Of a stretch of 64,000 bases of DNA, positions 802 to 54,192 are shown piece by piece; positions within the stretch are counted from its first letter, which is position 1; each line of letters begins with the position of its first letter. The notes beneath the pieces are model-generated. The model did no database searches. It was not told where the DNA came from and saw only the letters and a list, made by a program, of their open reading frames with translations. A program made the translations under genes and the position numbers. Where the stretch lies: contig BQFW01000015.1 of assembly GCA_020891255.1 (NCBI GenBank), forward strand, positions 1,364,001 through 1,428,000, written 5' to 3'. The stretch is from Entomortierella parvispora E1425. Taxonomy: Eukaryota; Fungi; Mortierellomycota.

Positions 802-1650
802 GTGTCTGACTATAAGCAAGAATTCGTTGCTGAAAAGAGTTCATCGGTGAGAAACACGATGTCGTACGCGCCTCTGTTATCCCCGATGAAGAAAACTCGC
901 CCATTGTCGAGGTCGCTGCCATCGTTTCCAAAAGGATGATCCTTCCCTCCCTGTCATGACCTTCCGTTTCTGGATCTTGGCCGTGTTCTTCACCGCGTTC
1001 CGGTCGTTCATGAACCGGTTCTTGTAAGTGTCATTCGAAAGTCAACAGCCCAAATAAGACTGTGGCCCAGGATCTAATACTTCATTCCTGGTTCAATAGC
1101 TGGTTTCGTACCCATCCTTTGACTATTGGTACTTTGGTCATCCATTTGACCGCTTTCCCCATTGGAAAGTTCATGGCTCGCGTCCTTCCCGCTGGTCGCC
1201 TCAACCCGTGGTCCCTTCAACATCAAGGAGCACGTTGCACGTTTTGATCGCCTTGACCACCAACTGTGCCTCTAACACTGCTTACGCTGTTGATATTATC
1301 GTTATTCAAAGAGTGTTTTACGACCAAGACTTTGGCTTCCTTGCCAACTTTCTCCTCGTCCTCACCACCCATCTGCTGGGTTATGGCATGGCCGGTGTTC
1401 TCCGTCGTTACCTTGTATAACCAGCCGTCATGGTCTGGCCCGTTAGCCTGGTCTAAGTTGCTTTGTTGAATACTCTCCACAAGGATGAGGATCTTGCTCC
1501 TGGCCAGTGGTCATGGTACAAGTTCTTCCTGGTTGCCATGCTCTGCATGCTCTGCTACGCCTGGTTCCCTGCGTATGTCTTTCCTGCTCTGACCGCCTTC
1601 GCTTGGATCTGCTGGATCAAGCCCGACAATCTGGTCCTTTCTCAGCTACC
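802..1650 (+). pseudogene. OPT oligopeptide transporter pseudogene A (frameshifted, 3'-truncated)
   Basis: Collinear with the OPT paralogs (SD-KQEFVAEK, DEENSPIVEVAAIVS, WFRTHPLTIG, GFLANFLLVLTT, LNTLHKDEDLAPGQW) and has the same intron (1024-1099). Lesions: GTG in place of ATG at 802, 1-nt deletions in exon 1, a 7-nt GCACGTT duplication near 1230-1243, and a premature stop near 1418. Homology ends at about 1650. Confidence 0.9.
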
Positions 1651-2945
1651 CCGAGGCCGGCTAAGCTGCATCGGTCTAATTGGTGATACTCTATCGATCA
1701 TCATCACATTATTAAACTTATTATCGATGTGCTTTGCGTTCTTCATGAAAGACTTCTATGGAAAATAAAATCCTGTGATTATTGAGAGCGGCCGATGACG
1801 GCCCAGGAATGAAGCAATGGAACATAGCATGCGACGAGGAGTAGAGCGAGCCAGCTTTATGAATTTCACTGTTGAAGCGAAACAGAAAATTAAGAAGATA
1901 CAAACGATCTGTATCCTGGGGGCTGGGACTGGGCAAAAAAAAGGAACCGGTGCACTCTGTCTCTCAAAAGGAAAAAGCCGGTGCATCGAGCTGGTTCACT
2001 GCCAAAAAAGCTCTCACTCTCAATTTTTTTTGGCTTCCCTTTTTTTTCCCTGGACCAATTCATTGAGGCCGAGAAGGGTCGTAGAAAGAACCTAGAGACT
2101 CCAAAGAGTAGTTTGAGAAAACAATGTCACCAAGAGCAGTGGCTTCCCTAGGGGGATTGGAAGGAAATGAGAGGAGAGGTTGGGTCTGAATTTGAGGCTC
2201 AAGCTGTGTTCGATCAAAACAATGGACCGAGGAAGATTTCTGAAAAAAAAAAAAAGAAAACAGAACCGCGGTTCCCAAAAATGTACGATGCTGGTGCACT
2301 GACCTCAAAAAAAAAACGAGAACCGAGTTGCACCACAGAATAGTCCCAATCCCTGAATTCTGAGTGTATCCGTTTGATGAAAGAGGCTGAGGCGGGATGA
2401 TGTACATAGGCAGGGTGACCCAAAACATAGAGACCTTTCCTGACCCATTAGAAAAAGTAGCTGAAACCCCGGGAGCGTGTTCTTTCTTTGGCCATTTTTG
2501 GCAACGCCCTGACCCAAATCGGGTCAGTTTAGCGAATATTGGTCCTTTGCTGTACCTTATGTACCCTATGGATCGGCATGGCAACGTAGCTGGAACTTAC
2601 CGCCAATGGCTAGCCTTTCTTGAAGATTCAATCCCCGGAGAAGGCGGATAACAATACCGAGGACCAAGGGCTGAGGGAGAGAATTTTCTGATGGGAAGCA
2701 TTCCTATTGGCCTACGTCGCGTCCATTGGAGCCAGCCAGCAAATGGTTGTCCGTTCCTGGCGAGAGGAGTTTTGTCAATACCCACTTGGGACGGGCTCTT
2801 GCTCACTTGGATGTCGACTTGCCCATTGATGGCAATAATAACGCGTGGACGGCCATTCCTCTTTCCTGAATCGGAGCGCCGTATTCCCTTTACTTGGCTG
2901 TCAACGCCCAATCGAGAATACGTACCTCGGCCACTGTATCTTGCG

Positions 2946-2953
2946 TATAAAAG
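2946..2953 (+). promoter_or_regulatory. TATA box of OPT copy 1
   Basis: TATAAAAG followed by a CT-rich leader, 118 nt upstream of the ATG at 3064. Confidence 0.65.
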
Positions 2954-3063
2954 GGTCCGTCTATCGACTTTTTCCCTTTGTCCAATTTGACCTTCTCATC
3001 TTCCCCCTTCCCCTCCTCTCTTCCCCTTCCCCTTCCCTCCCCCCCTCTCCTTCTTTGCTCACC

Positions 3064-5327
3064 ATGGCAACCGAGCAAAAGCAAGAGTATTTGGCCGAAA
3101 AGGAATACGTTGACGAGAAGCACGACATTGAGCGTTCGTCCGTGGTCCTTGATGAAGATGAAAACTCTCCCATCCCCGAAGTTGCAGCCATTGTTTCCAA
3201 CAGAGATGATCCCTCCATGCCCACCATGACCGTCCGTGTTTGGACACTGGGAATTTTTTTCACCGTAGTGCTGTCTTTCTTGAACCAATTCTTGTAAGTC
3301 CTCGCGTAGATAACATTGAGACCAACTTGACTCTGGGCACAATTCTTATAGTGTACAAATCATTCGATCCCTGTGTGTCTAGCTGGTTCCGTACCAATCC
3401 TTTGACCATTGGAATCTTAGTTGCTCAGTTGTTGGCGTACCCTCTCGGTGTGTTAATGGCCAAGATCCTTCCTTCAGGCCGTCTTAATCCTGGGCCTTTC
3501 AACATCAAGGAGCATGTTCTGATCACCCTTTGCGCTAATTGCGCTGGTGGTACCGCTTACGCTGTCGATATTATCGTCATCCAGAAGGTCTTTTACAAGC
3601 AGGACTTTGGATTCCTTGCCAACTTCCTCCTCATCCTCACTACTCAGATGTTGGGTTATGGAATGGCCGGTGTTCTCCGTCGTTACCTTGTCTACCCCGC
3701 TGCCATGATCTGGCCCGCCAACTTGGTTCAAGTCGCTCTATTCAACACTCTTCATAAGGATGAGGATCTTGCTCCCGGTCAGTGGACCCGCTACAAGTTC
3801 TTCGTGGTTGCGGCCATTGGTATGTTTGTATACCACTGGATCCCCAACTTCTTGTTTGGTGCTCTTGGCACTTTCGCCTGGATCTGCTGGATCAAGCCCG
3901 ACAACCACGTCCTTGCCCAAATTACTGGCTCCAATGGACTTGGCTTTGGTACGATGATCTTCGACTGGAACGTTCTTGTCTCCTTCTTGACCTCACCGCT
4001 TATTGTCCCATGGTGGGCCCAGGTCAACATCGCGGTTGGATTCTTCGCCCTTACTTGGGTTTTGGTTCCAATCTGTTATTACTCCAATGTGTGGGAGGCA
4101 AAACACTTCCCCATCTTCTCGAGCAAACTGTTCAAACAAGATGGAGACACTTACAATGTGACCGCTATCACGACCGACCACATGCTCGACGAGGCCAAGT
4201 ACGAGGCCTATGGACCTCTTCGTCTCTCTGTCTTCTTTGCTTTGACCTACGGTATCGGTTTCGCCGGTCTTGCTTCCATGGTCACCCACACCTGGTTGTA
4301 CCATCGCCACAAGTTGGTTGCCCAGTGGAGACAATCCCGCGAGCATTCTGAGGATATTCACCACAAGCTCATGCAGGCCTACCCTGAGGTTCCTGACTGG
4401 TGGTACTTCATCGTCTTTATTGTCATGACGGTTGTCGCCGTGATCACCTGCGAGGTCTGGGATTACAAACTCCCCTGGTGGGGCGTGCTTTTGGCCATCT
4501 TTTTGGCTGCTTTCTTCTCTCTCCCTGTTGGTCTCATTCAGGCTGTTACCAACCAGCAGCCAGGCTTGAACATCATCACTGAGTATGTTATTGGTTACGC
4601 TCTGCCCGGTCGCCCCATTGCCAATGTTACCTTCAAGACTCTTGGATATATCTCCATGGGACAGGCCTTGACGTTCGTCGGCGATCTCAAGCTTGGCCAC
4701 TACATGAAAGTCCCTCCTCGCGCCATGTTCTGGACTCAGTGCGTCGGCACAGTCATTGCTGGCGTCATTAACTTGGTCACGGCCAACTGGTTGCTCGCCA
4801 CCCAAGACAAGATCTGCACAGACGATAACAAGGACTTCTCTTGCCCCTCTGCCGGCACCTTCTACTCGGCATCGGTCATCTGGGGTGTTATCTCGCCGAA
4901 CAAGATGTTTGGACCTACGTCGATCTACAACCCCATCAATTACTTCTTCTTGATCGGTTTCTTCTTGCCCATTCCATTTTATTATCTCAAAAAGAGATTC
5001 CCCAATACCTGGATTGAGAATATCCACATCCCTGTGCTCTTGGCCGCTACTGGTATGATGCCCCCTGCCAAGCCCTTCAACTACCCTATGTGGGTCGCTG
5101 TCGGCTTTATTTTCCAGTACTATATTCGTCGCAGATACGCTTCCTGGCACATGCGCTTCACGTATGTGATGTCAGCCGCCTTTGATTCTGGTTCGGCCTT
5201 CTCCATCTTGGTCTGTTTCTTTATTTTCGGCATGAGAGGCGTTGAGATCAAGTGGTGGGGCAACAATGTCCCAAAGGCCCTGTGTCCCCTGGATGCGGCT
5301 CCTACTATCCCTATCGGTCAGCTGTAA
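3064..5327 (+). CDS. OPT: OPT-family oligopeptide/glutathione transporter, copy 1 (about 724 aa)
   Basis: Exons 3064-3293 and 3383-5327; intron GTAAGT...TAG, phase 2. OPT motifs SPIPEV, NPGPFNIKEH, YPEVPDWWY, NQQPGLNIITE, DLKLGHYMKVPPR. Many hydrophobic segments. Confidence 0.95.
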
Positions 5328-5996
5328 TAACAGAATCCTACCCCTAGCTCCTTGCTCCGCAACTGTAATAAATAACGGCGACTTATCGTCTTGCAATCTG
5401 TCCCAGAGATTAGTTAGCGTAAACCAGATGAGTGGGAAAGTTCGCGCCAGTCGGAATCACTCCTTTGCGCCCATGCTGTTGGGAAGGCGTCACTGCTTCA
5501 ATGGACCTATCCATCCTTGCGTAGCGCACAATTAGAGGAAATGGTTTATTTTGGAGAGTACTAGGAGGACAAAAAAATGCAACGGACAGTGGCTCACGCG
5601 CAGTTCCCTGTGTCTCGAGAGAGGGATGAACTTTGTGCTCCATGCCTTTTTTTTCTTTTTTTTGCTGACGAGGGATTAAATCAGTCAAGGGCGAAGGAAA
5701 GTGAACTAAATCCAAGACTCTAATTGACTGCATGTGTGGCCGCTCCAGCTTCTTCATGCACCCATGCCACTGCTGGACAACGATGCACCCCGAACGAGCC
5801 AATGAAGGATACACGCAGTGTATGTGCAGCCAAGGCAACAAAAACTTTAAGCGCCTGCTGAAATGAATAGTTGGTAAGCTTGGAAAGGACGCGATCGGCA
5901 GATCGTCCATTCCATCGGACGGTCTGAAAAGATCAAAAAAAAAAAAAAAAAAAAAGGGGGGGGGGGGGAAACGCGCGAAGCCCCAAGAGAGTGCTC

Positions 5997-6395
5997 ACCA
6001 CTCTCACCATCAGCATCATATCCGACTTCTTTCACGACTGCCTTCCACTTCACCTGTCATCTATGCCAAAGTCCTCCCTTCTGGTCGCCTCGACCCTGGC
6101 TCCTTCAACATCATGGCTACTGGTACCGCTTACACCGCTGGTATCACTAGCATCCAGGAGGTCTTCTATAGGCAGGTCGTTGGATTCCTTGCCAACTTCC
6201 TTCCAATTCTCACCGCTTAGAAATTCACATCGAGTGGAACATGAGCTTACCTGTATTCCATCGACTGCCTTTGACTCCAGTGTCACGTTCATGGTTCTGC
6301 TGTTGTACTTAATCCTCAGCATTCGCGGCAAGACTATGACCCCATGGTAGGGTACTGGGTCCTCTGAGGATGTCTGCCCACTAGATGGCGCCCCA
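5997..6395 (+). pseudogene. OPT relic B with a large internal deletion
   Basis: An N-proximal piece (AKVLPSGRLDPGSFNI...GFLANFLPILT) is fused directly to the C-terminal piece (AFDSSVTFMVLL...W*G...CPLDGAP). About 1.4 kb of coding sequence is missing and an in-frame stop is present. Confidence 0.8.
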
Positions 6396-43325: not shown

Positions 43326-45171
43326 ATGGCCCCCATTGACACCGGACTCGTCCTGGCGCAGCCCTTCTTCCTGTGCTCACTCATTCTCATTTCGGTAACA
43401 ACTCCTTCCTTTCGTCATCCTACTCCTCCTACTCCTACTCCTCTTTGTGGCAGTTACTGTCGCGACTAGACCGCGATTGTGCAGTCGGCCAACCAGTCAG
43501 TCAATCAGTCAGCTAGCCAGTCAGAGGCGCTGATTCTGCCAGGAACGAGAACTAGTACAAACGCACCAGGGTTCCACGAAAAGAAAAATACAATTGACAA
43601 ATGGACATGCACAAGCGCTCTCCCCTTCCCTTCACCCCTTTTCCCTTCATCACATCATCCAATCTTCCACTCTCCTGCAGTCAGCGGCAATGTGAACAAA
43701 AAAAAAACCGCTACACACGGAGACACACACCACATGCACCTAAGAGGGGAATGTCAGCCTGCCATCCTTCGCCACAGTTCGATATTAATAGCTCTGAACC
43801 CAAAGAGGGGGTTGCGGTCAGGCCAAACTGACAGCATGTGTCGACCTGGAAGCGAGAAACAGAAACAAATATGGTCAGCCAGGCGACCCCTTCCAAGGGC
43901 CCTGGATGGACGTGCTCAGGAGAGGGAAACAAAGAGTCAGATAGAATCAAAAAAGGGGTGGAGAATTGGAGGATATGGAGCACTTCGCTTGTCTTCTGTT
44001 TCTCCCCACACAAAACCTGATAAGGACAAGACCGGTGGTAAAGACTATCACCGGCCATCCGTTTGTCAGCTAGGATCGGAACAATGTAGACCTGAAAATA
44101 GAAGCGCAGGGTCACAAACAACAGCTCGGAACACAAGACAAAGGGTCTTCTTTTCTTGTTGACACGTCGTTTATTGTGGGGGCCCTGGTTCAACGTTGGG
44201 TGTCACATGTGCGGCTGTAGCTCGATGGTGTTTGCAAAGTCAGTCCGTCTTGGCAACAGGCCACCGATGGGGAGTGCAGCGGGTCAATTGGCGTTGGAAG
44301 AGCGTGAAGGCAGTGGTGGCAACAGAAACAACAATGCGTCATGCCGCAGCGGGATAGCTGCAGACTACGGAAACCTTCGCCGTCTAAGAGAACACTGCTA
44401 TCATGAACAAATGAGCTGACCCCCCAACCTCATTCTTGTGGTTGTATATTATAGATTGGTTGGTTCATCACCTTCATCGGTGCCTGTACCATTGGCTCAA
44501 GTGTCCGCCTGGTCTGGGTTGACATCTTTTACAACCTTTTCTTGGTCCTCGGTGTTACTCTTGCGGTCGCAACGCAGGCAGTGCGAAACTACCGCCTGGT
44601 CATCTTGACTTTCTTGGCCGGCGGTCTCTCCCTCCTGTTCATCTGCATCGATGATATGATCAACATCCATTACTCCAAGACCAGTGCCGTCGGTTCTGGA
44701 CTTATCTTCCAGTCTCTTGTCATTGTAAGCCCAAGGCCCCGGTCGATACATTTCTTTATTTCAAAGCCAATGTGCTCTAACCATCATTCCTCAATGGTTC
44801 ATAATTAGATCTTTTGGGTTGTGTTCTTTGGAGCAGAGGAAGATTCGTTGGCTAAGCGCAGCATTGACGGGTACACTATTCCCCGCACCCCTGGAGCTGC
44901 TGGACCTGCAAGCGGCATGATTGCGGCTCCTGATCAGCACCAATCGCCTTTGGAGAACCTGAGCTCTGTTGTGGTGGCACCTTCGGCAGACTATGCATAC
45001 AAGGCCCGTGCCCTGTACTCGTACGAGGCCAACCCTGAGGACAGTAACGAGCTCTCTTTCACCAAGGGCGACGTCTTGGACATTGTCGACAACAAGGGCA
45101 AGTGGTGGCAGGCTCGCAAGCAGGATGGTACCGTCGGTATTGCACCCAGCAACTATCTTCAATTGATTTAA
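43326..45171 (+). CDS. SHO1: Sho1 osmosensor, 4 TM segments + C-terminal SH3 (about 233 aa)
   Basis: Exons 43326-43394, 44455-44724 and 44809-45171. TM region IGWFITFIG...[10 protein letters not shown]...[13 protein letters not shown]; SH3 [41 protein letters not shown]...[11 protein letters not shown]. Confidence 0.9.
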
Positions 45172-45529: not shown

Positions 45530-48500
45530 TTATTGAGCCTTGCAAAGCAAAAGAACGACAACAAAATATGTTATTAATGAGAGCAAGTAACATTCACCAG
45601 AGCAAGAATAAATTTAATCTCAGAATACTTACATAATTTGGATCATATCCAATTCTTTGCGGCATCGGCGGGTTGATGCGCTCCGAAGGTTTTTTTCCAG
45701 GCGATGAGCTGCTGGCAGTGGTGGTGGGGTGCGATAAGAGTCGCTTGGGGTTGAAAGGAGGAAGGGCCTGACGGCTGGGCGTGGTCAGCTGCGAGTATCC
45801 TGAGATAGCGATGTTCAGGCTGGCATTCGCATCTCGTCCTCTTGTGCAATAGCCTGCCCTGAACGAAATACAGTCTGGATTGATGCATTCCACTGCGCCA
45901 TTCACGCGGACTACCCTTGTCCTTCCTTTCGAGTCCTTCCTCCTGGCGCGGACCAATCGGAGGAGCTTAAAGCAAAACGGACATAATTTTGAAGAATTGT
46001 GTTCGTTTGTTTTGCAAATCGGCCCATGCCTCATGTGTTTATGAGGAATAGTGTTGCCCCCCATGCGGTTGTTGCCCTTGAGTCGAGATCCGTTTCCTGT
46101 CCCAGCAGCTCCATGCAAAAAAAGCGGGACTACAACCGGTCTCAATTTCGGGCAACCCTTCAGATGTTTCAAGACGAGACGTCGCTTCGATGGATCCGTT
46201 TCATCGACTTGAAACTCAGGTCTGTGGTGAGTTTGGCATTCCAAGCAGAACCCGTTGCTCTGGAGGGCTGGCGTCTCATTGTCTACCATGTTCGCTGCTG
46301 TTGGAAAAAGAGTGGGAGAGTCAGTTTGACAGTCGATCGATGCAGCCTTAAAAGAATCAGGAAAAAGCGGATAGTTCAAATAACCGTACCGTAAGCAGTC
46401 TTTGCAAAAGCGCGTCGTTCTTTCGCTGCGACAACATCGTAAGTACGCTGCAAGCGCAGGCGCTTGGTTCGGCTCATGTTCCTGCATTGCCTTGATTGCT
46501 CAAAATCAACAATGGAATCACGCAGTTTACGACGGACCTCTCCTGCTTTTTCAAGGTCTGCAATAGTATTCGCCTGATGGGGACCCTGTTTCGCGAGCTC
46601 ATGGAAGGCCGACACAACGTGATCGTTCTCGCTCCTCGCCAGTGCTCTCGTCCGGGATTGGGCTTCCCTATTCAATCCAGACAGATGGCGGACGTGTTTG
46701 ACGGTAATGCACTGGGTATCAGGGATGATGATCTTGCCCAAAGTGTCTACGCGTCTCTCACCGATTGCAGGAGTAAATGGGTCGACTTTCGGTTGCGGGT
46801 CCACTTCAGATTGATCTGGGTCATCTTCCGAAAGAACCTCATATCTGTTGCACAGCTGCACCAACTTTGCCTCTGGAATCACCACTGTCTCAAACATGGT
46901 CTTCACCCCAGGATCGGTTCCTGCAGGCACAAGTGCTACCTTGCGATTGTGGGATTTGCTGTTATTGTCGCGGATACCGTCCTTCAAGTCGGCGATGCAG
47001 GTTGCCTCAGTGAAGTCCATTGACCCAGGTTGGTGGAGAGTCGGGCGCGACGTAATTTCTGGCTCTGCCGTCAAAGATTCCTTTCCTTTTCGAGACTTCT
47101 TTGCAGGTGCCGCTGAAGACGAAGATCCCGCGGAGGAGGAAGGCGGAGGTGCCGCTGACGATGAAGATGCAGGTGCCGCTGAAGTTGCTGGAGAGGTGGA
47201 CTTTGAATGTTGTAGAAAAACGTATTTGTCCTGTCTCAGCTCCTTTATCCTCATCCGGATGGGTATCGCTATCCTCCGTAAACGATGTACTCGCTGGCGT
47301 TGATTGTCCATCGCCTGGTAGCTGTCTTCCTCGTCCAGGCTCAATTGTTCCATGCCGGCTGAAAGAGCCTTGAGCGCCCAAAACCAACTCTTTAAAAGAC
47401 GTAAATCCTCTTCTTCCCGAGCCAAGTGTTTGTCGAGGACTTCGAGGTCGGCTGATAGTTCTTTGATGATGTCCGTTATCTCTTCTGCCATCAGCTTCGC
47501 CACCTCGGGGGAGACACTCAACGTCGATTTCGTCTTGTTGGTTTTGGTCCGTCCGCCCTTCTTTTTTTTCTCGCTCCATTTATCATGTGGAAACGTAGGC
47601 TTAATCTGCTTGCCCACAATCTGCACTTGTTTCTCATCGAGATAAAGGAACCTAAGAGTTCAAGCAAGTGGATACGAGTTAGTCCCTATTTGGCCATGAT
47701 TGTCACAAGAGTACTACAAGTTCAAGAGCTCGTACCGATCTTGAAACACCAAGTTGTGCGCGCGAAGGATATGCCCAACTTTCTTCATGTCAAAAAATGC
47801 ATTGAAGACAACATCTTTGCATGCAGGCGTTGATACGGAATTCACAAGGGAGTATATAACCCCGTCCTTGCATACATCATAATGGCCTCCTTCCCGTGCA
47901 CACAGGACTTCGCAGATGCCAGTAGCGCCTAGGGGCAATGGCTGTATCTTGCCGCAAGACGATAATGGAGATAGGCGCCGAGAGAATTGCTTGTATCCGA
48001 TTGCCCGTAGTAAGTTATTGGCCAGAAAACAAAAGGGCCCTAAGACAAGAGGGTGAACTACGATCTTGTCATCTGGACCACCACGCTTTGGCGTAAACGG
48101 TCTCAACCAGTTGACGATTTTGACGGCCACATCTAGTTCCTCGTCCAGATACTTTTGAGGTTCGTGTAAGGTGTCTCTGAAAATCTCCCGAGTGACTTCC
48201 ATGGGGCAATCACCACCTTTGTCCAGAAGTCTCGACATTACTGCCTCAAGGGGCCGAAGATGCTTAGAGGAAGGTTCTAATGATCGGGTTTGAAAAATGA
48301 CAGAGTTTGAAAAGAGGGTTGGTAAGAAAATGCCCCTGGTCCATGCAGTCACATAGTTGATCCTTTATCGAACACAACTGCATACCTTTTAGCTTTACAG
48401 CCGTCTGATCCGAACCCGCTGCTTGAGGATGAGAGCCATTGTCATCTGACGCTGAAAAGTCCTCGGTAGTTGTCATTAAACCTTTTGTCTCTTGGTCAAC

Positions 48501-51500
48501 GACAGCCTTAAACCCATCGTCCTCATCATCCTCGTCATCCTCATCATCCTCATCATCCTCATCAGACAAGCCGTTATCATCAGGCTCGTCCACTGACGCT
48601 CCACCTTTGCCGTTCTTGATCTCATTCTCTGTCGCTACAAGTTTCTCGAAGGTAGCACGGATCATGTCGACAATTCTCCTGGCACGAACAATGCGGGGTA
48701 GTTTGGTTGGAGCGGTAACATTGTCCCTATTTCGTAACGTCATTGTAGATCCGAACCAGCTCACTTTTGATTCTTCCACGACATGGTCGAGCTGCTGGAA
48801 TAGTGACTTGATCGAGTGCAGCAGCGCCTTCTTTCGGGCAAAAGGCTGGTTGTTGAAGGCAGCGTGCTCCTTTCTCTCCTTCTTCTCCTTTGCCTTTCTT
48901 GCCTTTGTCTCCCGGTATCTTTTCTCCGCAATTGGTCGGCGATGAACTCGGTGGAGAGAGCGTAGAAGCGCCTTTTTCAAAGAGAAATAGACAGTGGGGG
49001 TCCAGAGATTCCCTATGTTTGTTGCGAGTGTTCGAAGAAGTTCCACTCTTGTAAGAGACAGGCCCTCTGGAAGGTTTGCATTCGACTCGAAAGCGGATGT
49101 GGCTGAGGGGGATTGATTCTGGACGATGTCGATTAGCCTGTCCCATAGCGGATGTTCACCTCGAGCTCGCTTCTCGACATTTGGACCGACGTCAGTCGTG
49201 CTGGAGCGCTTCAGTCCAAGAGACGAGGGTCCGGCAGCGAAGTCTTTGTCGGGCTCGATAAATCCAGGGTCCTCTTCCCTTATGTTGCTATGAGCACGAT
49301 CCCAAACAAATCGTTTTCCAGCGTATTGAATGAAATCTTGTGAAAAAAGTTCCTTGTGGTCCTTTTGATCGTTGTTCAGACGTCCTTTGCTCTCACAAGC
49401 GATGCGCATGCTGCTTTGAAAATGATCGGATACAACGCCGACCCGAAGCGTCGTTCCCTTTCGCAGGTCCTCGTCACGTATCTCAAAGCCGTGTGGAAGG
49501 AACTTGATGAGATCCACATCTGATGAACTAGGATGCAGAGCGCCATGAAACACCTATAAACAAGGAGTAGAATAGCCTTTAAATTTAGCAAAAAAAAAAA
49601 AAAAAAAAAAAATACATGATCCTCAACCCATTCGCTCTTTCAATGGGAAATCACTCACCTCAAGTTGAACCTTCATCAGCGCGAGTTGAATCTCGTCCAT
49701 GTGCATGGATAGACAGCCTTGTTTTTGTTGTAGTAAATTCTTGATGTTGACTTTGTCATCATCAGAGAAATCGGAGCGGAGAATCTGGTCGAGGGCCACA
49801 GAGACTGTTCGAGTTTCTGGCTCCGTTTTTGTGACGACAGACTGGTCACCAGAAGGCGCGTGCTCCGGAGAGAGACTGGTTTCTTTAGCAACCGTCTTGA
49901 CCCAAATTCTGTCAAAATTCGCCTTCACGACATCGTGATAGTACTGGACAGGCTGTGCATGGAGCGCGATGTTTGACCTGAGGACGCTCGTGTCCACTGA
50001 ACTCTGCGGCAGCTCATAGTGGTGCTCCAACTTCCGTGCGGTGACAGCAAGAGTGTTTCTGGGCAACCCGGTAAGATTACGCTCGTGTTCGGCAACCTGT
50101 GTGCGCTTTGAACTTAGTACTTCCTCAGAGTTGTTTTTGGTGCTCTTCAGCGATGACCGGATAGTCTTAACAATGACATCTTCGGTGAGATGATCAACAC
50201 TAAATAAGGGGGGGGGATCATCAGCAAAAGCAAATCAAACAAGAGACAGAGATGATTAAACTTTCATTACCAGGCTTCCTGAAGACATCTCCTTTCAACC
50301 TCGCGTGTAATACATGAAGGGTATGATCGCCTTTGATTGGGTCTCTTCGTGTCCCTGAAGACAGCACGCTCGACTGACGGTCGACTGGATGTAGTAGTGA
50401 ACTGGGGCAGTCTCTCCACCGGTTGAAGTGAGGTCGTCGGTGCAATGGAACAACTGAGAGGCGAGAACGTTGATATTTGCTCGAAAGAAAGCTGGATGTG
50501 CAGCAGGGCGACATGCATCCTGGAGTGGGTTGATGGCCTAAATACCCTGATTCGGGAACGTGTAGACGGCAAGACGATCGTTATGCAGAGTACCTCTGAG
50601 AGATATCGGAGAAGTAGATAGCACGGAGGGATGTTGATGTGAACGTCTCCCAACTTCATCTTGAAGGCCGTCTTCCGTATGCCGTTCATCAAATCAGCCA
50701 AAAACCTGGCCAGGGGCAAGCCTGTTGTGTCATGATCCAGAACGACCAAGCCGAAATTTTTCTGAAGATACTCCAAGCTTTCATTCATGTTCTCCGAGTT
50801 GGGAAGAGGGGTTGTAACTTTGGATAAGCAGAAGAGGCGCTCTTCCATCACCAAGTCGGGCGTCTCATTCTGCAAGACGGCTTTGGCTTCCTTGAGGAGT
50901 TCCTCATCCAGACCCAATTCAATGGACAACTATGCAAACACTTGGTACTTAATCTCATTGCCTTTTTTTTGCTAACAAGCTGATAGAGCACGATCACCCA
51001 TGATTACCTGGTCGCTATCATGAACGTCAAGTTGCACGAGGTCGTCCTCAACTCCGACGTCTTCTGCAAGGAATGGGTCGTACTGGTCGCCATCATTCAG
51101 ACCCAGTTCAACAGACAACTATGCATACATCGGGCTTAAAATTAGTCTCATAGTCTTTTTGTTGGTGACCAGTTGGGAATGCACAATCGCCCATGACTAC
51201 CTGATCGCTATCATGAACGTCAAGTTGCACGAGGTCTTCCTCAACTCCGACGTCTTCTGCAAGGAATGAGTCGTACTGGTCGCCATCATTCAGACCCAAA
51301 CATTGAGTAATTAGTCTCATAGCCTTTTTGTTGGTGACCAGTTGGGAATGCACAATCGCCCATGATTACCTGGTCGCTATCATGAACGTCAAGTTGCACG
51401 AGGTCGTCCTCAACTCCGACGTCTTCTGCGAGGAATGAGTCGTACTGGTCGCCATCATTCAGACCCAGTTCAATAGGCAACCATGCAAACATTGAGTAAT

Positions 51501-51651
51501 TAGTCTCATGGCCCTTTTGTTGGTGACCAGTTGGGAATGCACAATCGCCCATGATTACCTGATCGCCATCATGACCATCAAGTTGCACAAGGTTGTCCTC
51601 AACTCCGACGTCTTCTGCGAGGAATGAGTCGTACTGGTCGGCCATTGGCAT
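45530..51651 (-). CDS. Giant, intron-containing Fanzor1/TnpB-like RuvC nuclease (about 1,645-1,690 aa)
   Basis: Exon chain: 51651-51559, optional 51118-51008, 50929-50271, 50199-49659, 49553-48386, 48276-47736, 47651-46390, 46297-45633, tentative 45538-45530 (otherwise stop at 45594). All junctions are GT-AG and phase-compatible, with no internal stop. RuvC-I AGTDPG (D at 46913-46915), RuvC-II TNEHNSSKLC (E at 46002-46004), Zn finger CPFC...CINPDC, RuvC-III RDANASLNIA (D at 45831-45833). Confidence 0.85.
50908..51645 (-). repeat. Tandem array of a ~189-bp exon+intron unit (4 copies plus a partial fifth)
   Basis: Unit is a 111-nt exon (LSVELGLNDGDQYDSFLAEDVGVEDDLVQLDVHDSDQ) plus a ~78-nt intron (GTAATC...TGCATAG). 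Copies are near-identical at the nucleotide level; one junction has a 20-bp deletion. Confidence 0.92.
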
Positions 51652-52084
51652 GGGAAGCGTCGAGAGCGAGTTGCAAACGAAAGGGACAAATTCGAAAAAC
51701 GCGCTGACTTGACGCGTGTCATCGTGAATCATGATTCCTGTAGTGGATTTGCCTCTAAGCCACCCAGTTTCTTTCCTACTATTTCATCGCTGCTGCTTTT
51801 GCTATACGGGCGCTGGTTCCATACGAGCAGGCGAGGAAACTTTTAGGAGAGCCCGGAAAGACGCATCAACAGCCCAGAGAAACATCTATTTGCGAGTATG
51901 GACGCTTCAGGTTCGAACGACAAGCAAGAGAGGCTAGCTTCGAAGAAGATACCTTCGGTGCAGCTGGCTCGTCCGTCCCACCTCTTGGTCTTGGGGCGGG
52001 GCGATTCTGGAACCGCGGGCACCCTCCTTCAAACTCACCACATTCCATGTATCACGTGGTACTTTTACTGTGATGGGGGATGTG

Positions 52085-52814
52085 GGGATCCAGCAACTTC
52101 GTCGTGCTGATCTCTAGGATCACGAAACGATTCCCGAGTGAGGGTTTCCGTGGTGACTTCCCAGGCCAGGAAACTTCTGCCTTTAAAAGCAGCCAGTACA
52201 GATACACGAATCACCCGCGAGAAAGGAACTGGAGTGTTGACTGTGGAATAGGCATACGACTTCAATGACGTTTGTCCATCCTTGCTTGTCTCATCAATAA
52301 ACACCAGCTGCTCTGGAAAGAGGTACAACTCATTCATGTTTTGGTAAATTCACTCGACTTCATACGGGTTTGATTTGCGTGCTCGCTTCTGCAATTTTTT
52401 TTCTTGATCTTTTCAAGTGCGGCAAATGGTGGAGACTGATGTATTCTGCAGATCTGGAAATTCACGCCTAAGTTCCTCTTGTAGCTCCTCAAGGAAGAAG
52501 CAAGGATGGTGTTTGGTATATGACTCGACGAAAGTCAACACATCTGGTGGCCATCGAGAAGAGCTTTTGCGCGTATGTTCAATGTGAACGTTCCCTGTGT
52601 TATTGAAATGACCTGTCCATGTCCAAAAAAAAAAAAAAAAAAAAAATAAGAAAAAAAACGCGAAGGCGACGCGACTCAACAACGCTGACTTACGAGACCA
52701 TTTCGTGATCATGTGTTGCGAAATGCCTAGCAACACTGCCACAGCAGACCTGGGCAGGCCCATTATATTGTAGAGCTTAATGGCGCACCAGCGAATATCG
52801 TCTGAAAAGGTCAT
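52085..52814 (-). mobile_element. Decayed IS630/Tc1-mariner transposase (pseudogene) with an intron
   Basis: Exon 52814-52694, intron 52693-52613 (GTAAGT...CAG), then HTH region MTFSDDIRW...LLGISQHMITKWSRHFNNTGNV...HPCFFLEELQEEL...SVSTICR. Frameshift and stop near 52415-52340. First catalytic motif PEQLVFIDETSKD and RVSVLAA are present; the later DDE residues are deleted. No TIRs found. Confidence 0.85.
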
Positions 52815-54192
52815 TGGGATGTGGGGTGATGTTTGAGAAGCAACACGCACGTTGCAGTTTAAATACAGCGGTCCGAATAGCAGTTTCTCATCTTTTTACC
52901 CTTTCTGGATGCGTAAAAAGTTCGCAAGTATACTAAAAATAAACGGATGCCAGGTAAAATACGAACATACCCATGCTTTTTCGAACCACACGCAGAAACT
53001 CCTTGTCAGTGCGGTTCCAAAACGCACCCTACGCTTTTCTGATTTTATTTATCCTGCGTCCATGTTCACGTGCCCCGTCTTGTCACGTGCGTTTAGCCCA
53101 CCAAATTTCTAAGTTAACCGGTGTTACTGTTCATTGATATATATTTTATCATCATGATATCTGCAAGTTTATTTTTTTTTAGGTGCAAAGCACAATAAAT
53201 AATCCTCACCGTGTGCACACACATTTTTCTTTTTCTTTCTTTCTTTTTTTCCTCGGAAGACAGACACTGAAGACAGGTCGAAATAAAATTGATCCGCAGC
53301 GAACAAAATATGCAAGAAGTGAAAGGAAGAGGTGCAGCAATACGCCTTTCCAGTAGTACCGAAGATAGAACTATGATCGGCCTGGTCTGTGCGAAAATGG
53401 ATGCATTGGCCTTCCGCATCCCAAGATTATGGAGAGACGTGTCCTGCGCATTGGAGCGCAGGAATTGGAGGAAGAGAAAGAAAAAAAAAAAGAGAGATGT
53501 CATCTTATCAAACACGCAGCCTGCCCTTCTCTCCATTGTTTACGTATTTGCAGTGTGGTTGTTCTCCACACGTTTTGAACATGGAGGTTACAGAGAAGAA
53601 AGTGGGGAAAAGCACATGCTGGATGTAGGATGTCCCTGCAGCCATTTTTTTCGCTCTCAGACAAGTTTTTTTTTTTTTTTTTTTTTTTTTTTGCGGTCTT
53701 GTCCATCGGCAAGGCTCAATCAGGGAAAGCGTTGGGGTGGTTTGAAGGCAGAAGGAATATCTACCAACTTCAGTCGAAGATCGGCCTGTTTTGATGTTGA
53801 TCTTGCGCACAGAGGCAGGGCCGACAGAGGCACAGAGGGACAGTCGGACACAGACTCCACAGAACATACAACTCAAAAGAAGCTCGGAAATGCCAACAAA
53901 AAGTTGGAGAGAAAGAACACACAAGACACAAGACTGACGGACAGACAGGACGAAAAGACTGCCGGCCTGACAGCCGGGCAAACAAATAAGCAAGGGAAGC
54001 AGGGACGAGCAGAAGACCGCGGCCGCATGGCGACAGACAGAAGGACGACGGAACAAGAAAAAAAAAAATCAGCGTCACGGCGCTCTTTCAAAAAAGGCTT
54101 TCTTTCCTCTCTTCCTAATAACCATACTCTTCACCAAAGTCCCTCCTTCGTTCTTCTCACACTTTGCCTTTTCCTCCCTCGCCTTGGGCCGC

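Follow-up and report, generated by a model that had tools for sequence, protein, structure and literature searches.

A 64,000-nt stretch of the Entomortierella parvispora E1425 genome (contig BQFW01000015.1, positions 1,364,001–1,428,000; hereafter the window, numbered from its first letter) was analyzed around a set of minus-strand reading frames that had been predicted to encode a giant Fanzor/TnpB-like nuclease. With a probability of roughly 0.7, the locus is one Tc1/mariner-superfamily element with a truncated transposase and an apparently intact Fanzor1-type gene of 1,645–1,682 amino acids (aa), the gene of a mobile element and not a domesticated one. Characterized Fanzor1 proteins are compact, and most work on them has concerned genome editing. 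Earlier work has described Fanzor1, the Mariner/Tc1 elements that carry it, the introns of its genes, and its relocated glutamate (Glu). New here are a size ~2.5-fold larger, an N-terminal OTU-like module with additional inserts, a conserved terminal intron abutting the transposon end, and a restriction to Mortierellomycota and soil. The Mortierellomycota family keeps a Fanzor1 core under purifying selection while adding ~1,000 residues, and thereby offers a natural experiment on what an OMEGA nuclease acquires from eukaryotic hosts or transposons.

Gene structure and homologs

Six minus-strand open reading frames (ORFs) at 45.5–51.7 kb of the window chain into one spliced ORF without an internal stop; the large exons that they contribute are called E1 to E6. 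The gene model was built by stop-to-stop mapping of the three minus frames and by placing splice sites by motif, with frame and stops checked by script. Counted from the ATG at 51651, the spliced ORF is 1,645 aa long when the first donor is joined to the acceptor at 50930, and 1,682 aa long when a duplicated exon at 51118–51008 is included. The sequence predicts an apparently intact gene with 8 or 9 exons: ~4.9 kb of coding sequence has neither stop nor frameshift, and every splice site is a canonical GT..AG. The original prediction had listed the same six ORFs and joined them without a stop into ~1,650–1,690 aa, through introns of 71–109 nt in phases 2, 0, 1, 2, and 1. All six ORFs were found, the predicted introns agree exactly (71, 105, 109, 84, and 92 nt), and the assembled length falls at 1,645 or 1,682 aa with no stop.

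We searched protein and nucleotide collections for relatives of each exon. A library of 5.8 billion proteins returned only ten fragmentary relatives of the last large exon, E6. A HMMER scan with E5 found 46 proteins, and the long ones are NCBI "hypothetical proteins" from four Mortierellomycota taxa, namely Entomortierella parvispora (at least 12 paralogs), Mortierella sp. AM989, Gryganskiella cystojenkinii, and Mortierella alpina. One of them, GJJ70720.1 (P0057; E. parvispora, 1,626 aa), is collinear with E1–E6. It shares 37.9% identity with the spliced window protein over 1,534 aligned residues, and its C-terminal region shows 29% and 57% identity to E5 and E6, respectively. Contigs carrying the fragmentary relatives (L001/L002, L003, and L004) are collinear with the window exons at 28%–55% identity, with L004 matching E3, E4, and E6 only. 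E1 has homologs in L001, L003, P0057, and a second annotated protein, P0013 (tblastn/blastp, 1e-16 to 1e-27). Because every exon has collinear homologs in annotated proteins and in independent contigs, including L010 and L011, at E values of 1e-16 to 1e-76, the chain of exons is far beyond chance.

Judged from these sequence matches, members occur only in Mortierellomycota and on soil contigs, and all public ones are annotated solely as "hypothetical protein." A literature search found no paper linking Fanzor with Mortierella. In the available part of the supplement to the main Fanzor catalog (Nature 2023), Mortierella is represented by a single 677-aa entry, and the accessions that were checked are absent; an earlier listing may exist.

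The annotated introns of P0057 follow residues 26, 277, 466, 794, 977, and 1384, and one more precedes the last two codons. Junctions predicted in the window fall on these positions or a few residues from them, with adjacent window exons abutting at P0057 residues 466 and 977. Since the intron positions match, the gene structure is old and common to the family, which keeps a fixed set of seven introns. An additional intron within E1, where three frames are open, was considered and ruled out, as homologs align along the whole frame-1 ORF. In a soil metatranscriptome, one 247-nt contig was found (93% identity, on E3), and it spans no junction. Predicted features of the gene, in the order of transcription, are as follows.

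51559–51651, minus: exon 1 (MPMADQYDSF...DGDQ), 93 nt; positional counterpart of P0057 exon 1 (first intron after residue 26)
50930–51651, minus: four tandem units (169–189 bp), each comprising the first exon with its intron (Tandem repeats finder, self-BLAST, sequence reading, splice modeling)
50271–50929, minus: exon E1, 659 nt; alpha/beta domain whose fold weakly resembles OTU (homologs at 1e-16 to 1e-27, structure-library matches)
50270–50200, minus: intron, 71 nt, GTAATG..TTTAG, phase 2
49659–50199, minus: exon E2, 541 nt; helical part of the N-terminal extension (homologs, P0057 model)
49658–49554, minus: intron, 105 nt, GTGAGT..ATAG, phase 0
48386–49553, minus: exon E3, 1,168 nt; the Fanzor WED/REC half begins here (exon starts at P0057 residue 466), with an acidic low-complexity insert at the exon end
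48385–48277, minus: intron, 109 nt, GTATGC..TTAG, phase 1
47736–48276, minus: exon E4, 541 nt; REC/WED, the best conserved N-terminal block (33%–50% identity, 1e-31 to 1e-52)
47735–47652, minus: intron, 84 nt, GTACGA..TTAG, phase 2
46390–47651, minus: exon E5, 1,262 nt; beta-hairpin, coiled-coil insert of ~100 residues, Ser-rich linker, RuvC-I, helical bridge
46389–46298, minus: intron, 92 nt, GTACGG..ACAG, phase 1
45633–46297, minus: exon E6, 665 nt; RuvC-II region, relocated Glu, C4 Zn ribbon, RuvC-III
45632–45539, minus: terminal intron, 94 nt, GTAAGT..CAAG, before a 9-nt last exon
45530–45538, minus: last mini-exon GCTCAATAA, 9 nt (Ala-Gln-stop)

The 5' end is complicated by the tandem units. 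An in-frame ATG (51651) is kept only in unit 1, owing to a 1-nt difference. Unit 1 has a mutated acceptor (CATGG) and unit 2 has lost its acceptor by deletion, while units 3 and 4 have CATAG, which leaves intact acceptors only at 51119 and 50930. Because the first exon is quadruplicated and two acceptors are intact, the 5' structure of the mRNA is ambiguous between the 1,645-aa and 1,682-aa forms.

Fanzor1 module and N-terminal extension

The C-terminal part of the protein contains, in order, GTDPG (46921–46907), PLFLHGAAGTGNGSRLKG, TNEHNSSKLCPFC (46010–45972), CINPDC (45887–45870), and the RD of RDANAS (45836–45831), the same motifs in the same order as first reported. The relocated Glu of Fanzor type sits in TNEHNSSKLCPFC, in the motif (N/D)E-x-x-[ST][ST]-x-x-C. 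The three acidic residues and four Zn ligands that the original prediction described as retained are conserved across the family: D1247 (GTDPG), E1520 (NEHNSS), D1577 (RDANA), and four Cys are kept in 7 full-length members with 25%–38% identity, and the E, the D, and 4 Cys are invariant in an alignment of the ten fragment relatives (A1). The 1,645-aa model contains the Fanzor motif as defined by Bao and Jurka (PMC3627910), D-X(125,275)-[TS]-[TS]-X-X-C4 zinc finger-X(5,50)-RD. The distance from D1247 to S1523 is 275 residues, at the upper limit of that spacing, and is followed by SS-KL-CPFC...CINPDC and then 11 residues to RD.

Sequence searches gave faint signals. A profile of the last exon placed SpuFz1 (8GKH) at the top of its PDB matches, with NEHNSSK..C..C and RD aligned; the window E and D align with positions equivalent to E541 and D606 of SpuFz1, residues whose roles have been described (PMC10432273). 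Nine of 11 family members match PF07282 (best E value 1.5e-4; P0057, 0.0029), all below the gathering score. In the ESM Atlas, E6 scores 0.98 beside a Mucoromycota cluster that partly carries PF07282. Pfam searches with individual exons yielded nothing significant, and phmmer searches of E5 and E6 against the PDB produced no match.

Structures were predicted for P0057 with AlphaFold2 in two overlapping parts, and the window exons are rows of both alignments. The model of residues 960–1626 has a mean confidence (pLDDT) of 74.9. The original prediction had suggested a Foldseek comparison with SpuFz1. On this homolog model, SpuFz (9cey) was the first match (E value 5.5e-6, probability 1.0), followed by PpFz and GtFz and then by Cas12o/p/f. 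VIA-align superposed residues 210–627 of the model on SpuFz 357–633 with a Z of 15.1; Cas12f structures were also among the matches, at Z of 10–12. The model of residues 1–1000 (pLDDT 74.4) aligned at P0057 411–994 with SpuFz 18–341 (Z 16.0), PpFz (13.6), and GtFz (13.0). Among AlphaFold DB clusters, P0057 206–1000 matched uncharacterized proteins (E value down to 4e-18), and a weaker match (6.6e-3) is named a Cas12f1-like TNB protein. Sequence identity in the structural alignments to solved Fanzor1 proteins is 12%–15%. For this homolog, predicted structure settles the family as Fanzor1-type where sequence tools are nearly blind, and the split RuvC and Zn ribbon proposed for the C terminus have solved Fanzor1 structures as their best matches.

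According to the P0057 models, a complete Fanzor1 body extends over approximately residues 411–1590, or ~1,180 residues compared with ~615 in SpuFz1. The excess consists of inserts, namely an acidic tract, a coiled-coil hairpin of ~100 residues, and a Ser-rich linker, which roughly double the module. Typical Fanzor1 proteins are 600–700 aa long (PMC11423790), so the window protein is ~2.4–2.7 times their length, within the 2–3-fold excess estimated at the outset. An N-terminal extension of 1,250 aa, as had also been supposed, did not hold up. Most of it is the Fanzor1 WED/REC half with insertions (P0057 411–994, Z 16.0), and the truly extra part is ~400–430 aa plus the internal insertions.

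The extra part corresponds to the first ~410 residues of P0057 and to exon 1, E1, and E2 of the window (431 residues). The predicted order along the protein is a short acidic exon, an OTU-like alpha/beta domain of ~160 residues, a helical region, and the complete Fanzor1 module. Residues ~70–190 of the P0057 model recurrently, if weakly, match OTU deubiquitinase domains in four structure libraries, with Foldseek E values of 0.2–5. These are Otu2 (Z 6.0) and OTUD5 (Z 5.5) in the PDB, OTUD6B in Swiss-Prot (probability 0.92), AlphaFold DB clusters, and three ESM Atlas rows that carry PF02338, with a template modeling score by hit of 0.46 to a 166-aa OTU cluster. The match had no sequence-level counterpart in Pfam searches of the exons, in a PDB search with a profile of the E1 domain, or in an ESM Atlas search with E1, which gave no lead. 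The only match of the E1-domain profile in the PDB, to mL55, was judged to be chance. An alignment of the domain (A4) has no invariant Cys or His; the invariant residues are I118, S122, and L158. The domain is therefore modeled as an OTU-like fold that is probably not a protease. It superposes by fold on the OTU-family deubiquitinases Otu2 and OTUD3/5/6B but has neither their sequence nor a conserved Cys/His, and the resemblance is one of fold only.

Compared with solved Fanzor1 proteins (SpuFz1, PpFz1, and GtFz1; PDB 8GKH, 9CEU–9CF1), the family has the same WED/REC and split RuvC with C4 Zn ribbon and the same relocated Glu and RD motifs. Both halves of the homolog model find their best structural matches there (Z 15–16), and the gene is likewise eukaryotic, intron-bearing, and transposon-borne. 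It differs in length (~1,650 versus 600–700 aa; PMC11423790), in ~400–430 added N-terminal residues with the OTU-like domain, in the acidic tract, coiled coil, and linker, in a terminal intron placed right before the transposon end, and in a sequence similarity that is barely detectable (12%–15% in structural alignments; profile E value 0.13). Bacterial TnpB (ISDra2) and Cas12f share the RuvC fold and the Zn-ribbon (TNB) module. In contrast to them, the window protein does not use the canonical RuvC-II Glu position and is four times larger, its gene is eukaryotic with introns, and its carrier is Tc1/mariner rather than IS200/IS605.

Transposon context and alternative readings

Based on sequence comparison, the gene sits in a predicted ~7.7-kb TA-flanked DNA transposon of the Tc1/mariner superfamily (window 53195–45533, minus strand). 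The ends were found by comparing paralogous copies; an inverted-repeat search around the gene gave poly-A/T pairs only. Assigned features of the element are listed below.

53196–53197, minus: TA target-site duplication at the left (5') end; the window and three E. parvispora copies diverge there (...TA followed by TTGTGCTTTGCACC)
53184–53195, minus: left terminal inverted repeat, TTGTGCTTTGCA..., identical at 10/12 positions to the reverse complement of the right end (TTGAGCCTTGCA)
52119–53195, minus: Tc1/IS630-type transposase module, truncated (DNA match to L007, Pfam)
45533–45544, minus: right terminal inverted repeat, ...TGCAAGGCTCAA, then TA at 45532–45531

Two E. parvispora loci define the repeat unit. 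L007, where P0057 is encoded, matches L009 at 99.6% identity across 8,143 nt; beyond sharply defined ends the flanks are unrelated, and a third locus (L008) is ~96% identical. The unit starts with the transposase 2.7 kb upstream of the gene, and the gene's stop codon forms its other end. In L007 and L009, it begins at the same position as the left inverted repeat of the window and ends in ...GGCACAA followed by TA and unrelated flanks, at the point equivalent to the right end of the window. In other lineages (L010 and L011), the terminus is ...ACACTGTA, which is common among Tc1-type elements.

Window positions 53201–52119 are 87% identical in DNA to L007 7326–8441 over 1,125 nt, with the same left end. 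In the window, Pfam identified HTH_23 (3.6e-5, just under the cut-off at 23.9 vs 24.6 bits) and HTH_32 on 52413–52850, and only an N-terminal fragment of DDE_3 (0.011) on 52065–52337, with the truncation at 52119. The L007 counterpart has HTH_23 and DDE_3 (1.9e-17), yet is broken across several frames. Because its transposase is truncated, the window copy is immobile by itself and needs transposase in trans. The 5' module is 87% identical between the window and L007 in DNA, and the Fanzor cargo is 38% identical in protein. This pattern repeats that of the chimeric Mariner-Fanzor1 families of 2013, for which Fanzor1 genes within Mariner/Tc1 elements, TA duplications, and chimeric 5' modules were described (PMC3627910, Bao and Jurka 2013). 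The elements PGv-1, PUl-1, and PUl-4 of that study have the same TA duplication, a transposase upstream of the Fanzor gene, and the same chimeric design of a conserved ~1-kb 5' module with differing 3' cargo. The window element differs from them in its occurrence in Mortierellomycota, a far larger cargo gene, and a truncated transposase.

The biology of TnpB and Fanzor1 (PMC10432273, PMC10530073, and PMC11423790) indicates how such an element might work, and by this analogy we infer nuclease activity for the window protein. It would bind an omega RNA produced at the element's 3' (right) end and would make a double-strand cut in DNA that matches a flanking-derived guide, next to a target-adjacent motif (TAM). 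Cutting would help the element to persist or to home after excision. With a Tc1/mariner carrier that has sharp ends, both guide and TAM could be predicted from the element.

Selection was estimated from two pairs of copies, a calculation that had also been proposed originally, as the ratio of nonsynonymous to synonymous substitution rates (dN/dS). A soil contig (L005) with 93.5% DNA identity across E5, intron 5, and E6 gave 0.19 (0.11 for E6 alone), and the E. parvispora copies L007 and L008 gave 0.25 over 1,625 codons. At 0.19–0.25, the family is under purifying selection for protein function, though single copies die.

The gene might instead be a recently dead relic, its ORF intact only in appearance, unexpressed or nonfunctional, and due to decay like its transposase. 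The truncated transposase, the lost acceptors in the tandem duplication of exon 1, the frameshifts in relatives L005 and L008, and the metatranscriptome match that spans no junction all speak for this. We nevertheless consider it unlikely, given ~4.9 kb of coding sequence in 8–9 exons without stop or frameshift, canonical splice sites, a full set of catalytic residues and Zn ligands, and dN/dS well below 1.

The original prediction had raised host domestication, in which a single-copy cellular gene serves the fungus and has lost its transposon context. Introns as abundant as in host genes, a long intact ORF, a dN/dS of 0.19, and the truncated transposase next door would fit such a gene. Its position and its multicopy relatives make this view very unlikely. 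TA-flanked inverted ends bound the gene precisely, together with a Tc1/IS630 transposase remnant, and these ends are common to multicopy E. parvispora elements (96%–99.6% identical); its last exon ends on the element terminus; and E. parvispora has at least 12 annotated paralogs, some of them 96%–99.6% identical at different loci. Least credible, and to our minds highly improbable, is a protein that is RNA-guided or binds DNA but serves mainly as something other than a nuclease, such as a chromatin- or ubiquitin-linked regulator acting through the OTU-like domain and coiled coil with dispensable RuvC activity, for although ~1,000 residues exceed a normal Fanzor1, OTU-like folds were matched in four libraries, and nuclease-dead TnpB relatives that act as regulators do exist, the invariant RuvC D/E/D and Zn ribbon argue for selection on catalysis and the OTU-like domain has no conserved Cys/His and a weak fold match (Z ≤ 6.0).

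Several observations weigh against reading the locus as an intact Fanzor1-type gene in a Tc1/mariner element. The structures belong to P0057, a 38%-identical homolog, and not to the window protein itself. At the sequence level, the last exon of the window has no PF07282 match at E ≤ 1, and its best PDB profile E value is just 0.13. The inverted ends are short (~12 bp) and imperfect. The first splice is uncertain, owing to the duplication of the 5' exon, and the introns are predicted, as the metatranscriptome match supplied evidence for neither a splice junction nor an omega RNA. Copies in the family do decay: L005 has a 1-nt deletion in a C-run within E5 (assembly error or decay), and the Fanzor-like gene of L008 has two frameshifts (1-nt deletions).

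Terminal intron and candidate omega RNA

In all lineages, an intron of 90–130 nt separates the ORF from the final ~10 nt of the element. The stop codon TAA consists of the TA duplication and one flanking base, an A, in three insertions (window 45530–45532, L007 15464–15466, and L009 ~13931–13933), and the annotated coding sequence of P0057 likewise ends on GCACAATAA at the end of the element. With the TA duplication as the end of the last exon, mature transcripts must extend into flanking DNA. Such read-out past the right end is what a guide-bearing omega RNA would require. In the same three insertions, a T precedes TA in the left flank, which suggests a palindromic TTAA-like target context.

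The only nucleotide-level match of the window gene to L007 is a 41-nt block across the terminal donor (blastn). Spanning the end of the ORF and the 5' part of the terminal intron, TTATGTAAGTAYTCTNAGMTYAAAT (about 45640–45608) is the most conserved nucleotide motif of the locus, and it recurs in L006 and L011. In L006, it is located past the stop codon, so it is conserved as DNA or RNA and not as coding sequence. We regard this block as a candidate omega-RNA segment, transposase-binding site, or splicing element. Single-sequence folds of the 3' end were not clearly better than those of shuffled sequences (z of −1.3 and −2.3), and there was no match to an Rfam family at the 3' end. A sub-threshold Rfam hit in the terminal intron, to the C/D-box family SNORD103 (window 45538–45607, minus strand; 23.2 bits against a gathering score of 45, E value 0.041), was attributed to chance, since relatives do not conserve the putative D box.

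A more elaborate version, which we hold to be quite doubtful, is that the terminal intron doubles as an omega-RNA scaffold, that splicing sets the ratio of nuclease to guide, and that the OTU-like domain and coiled coil couple RNA-guided cleavage to factors of ubiquitin or chromatin pathways. On this view, guide-bearing omega RNA would come from unspliced read-out transcripts and mRNA from spliced ones. If true, this would be a eukaryote-specific elaboration of the OMEGA mechanism.

Other features were observed at related loci and beside the element. A second giant Fanzor-like gene, annotated as 1,591 aa, occupies L010 1–2552 (E. parvispora BQFW01000008) on the minus strand. It lies immediately upstream of the gene for P0013 and is accompanied by a Tc1-like module of its own in the same orientation. 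As annotated, P0013 ends before its RuvC-II/III exon, which is present at L010 11209–11799. The E. parvispora copy L008 is interrupted at 996–6369 by a ~5.4-kb insertion with a hAT-type transposase (Dimer_Tnp_hAT). In the window, the next gene on the 3' side is a convergent host gene with a C-terminal SH3 domain (SH3_1, 2.1e-13; 44821–45171, plus strand), which stops ~360 bp short of the element's right end.

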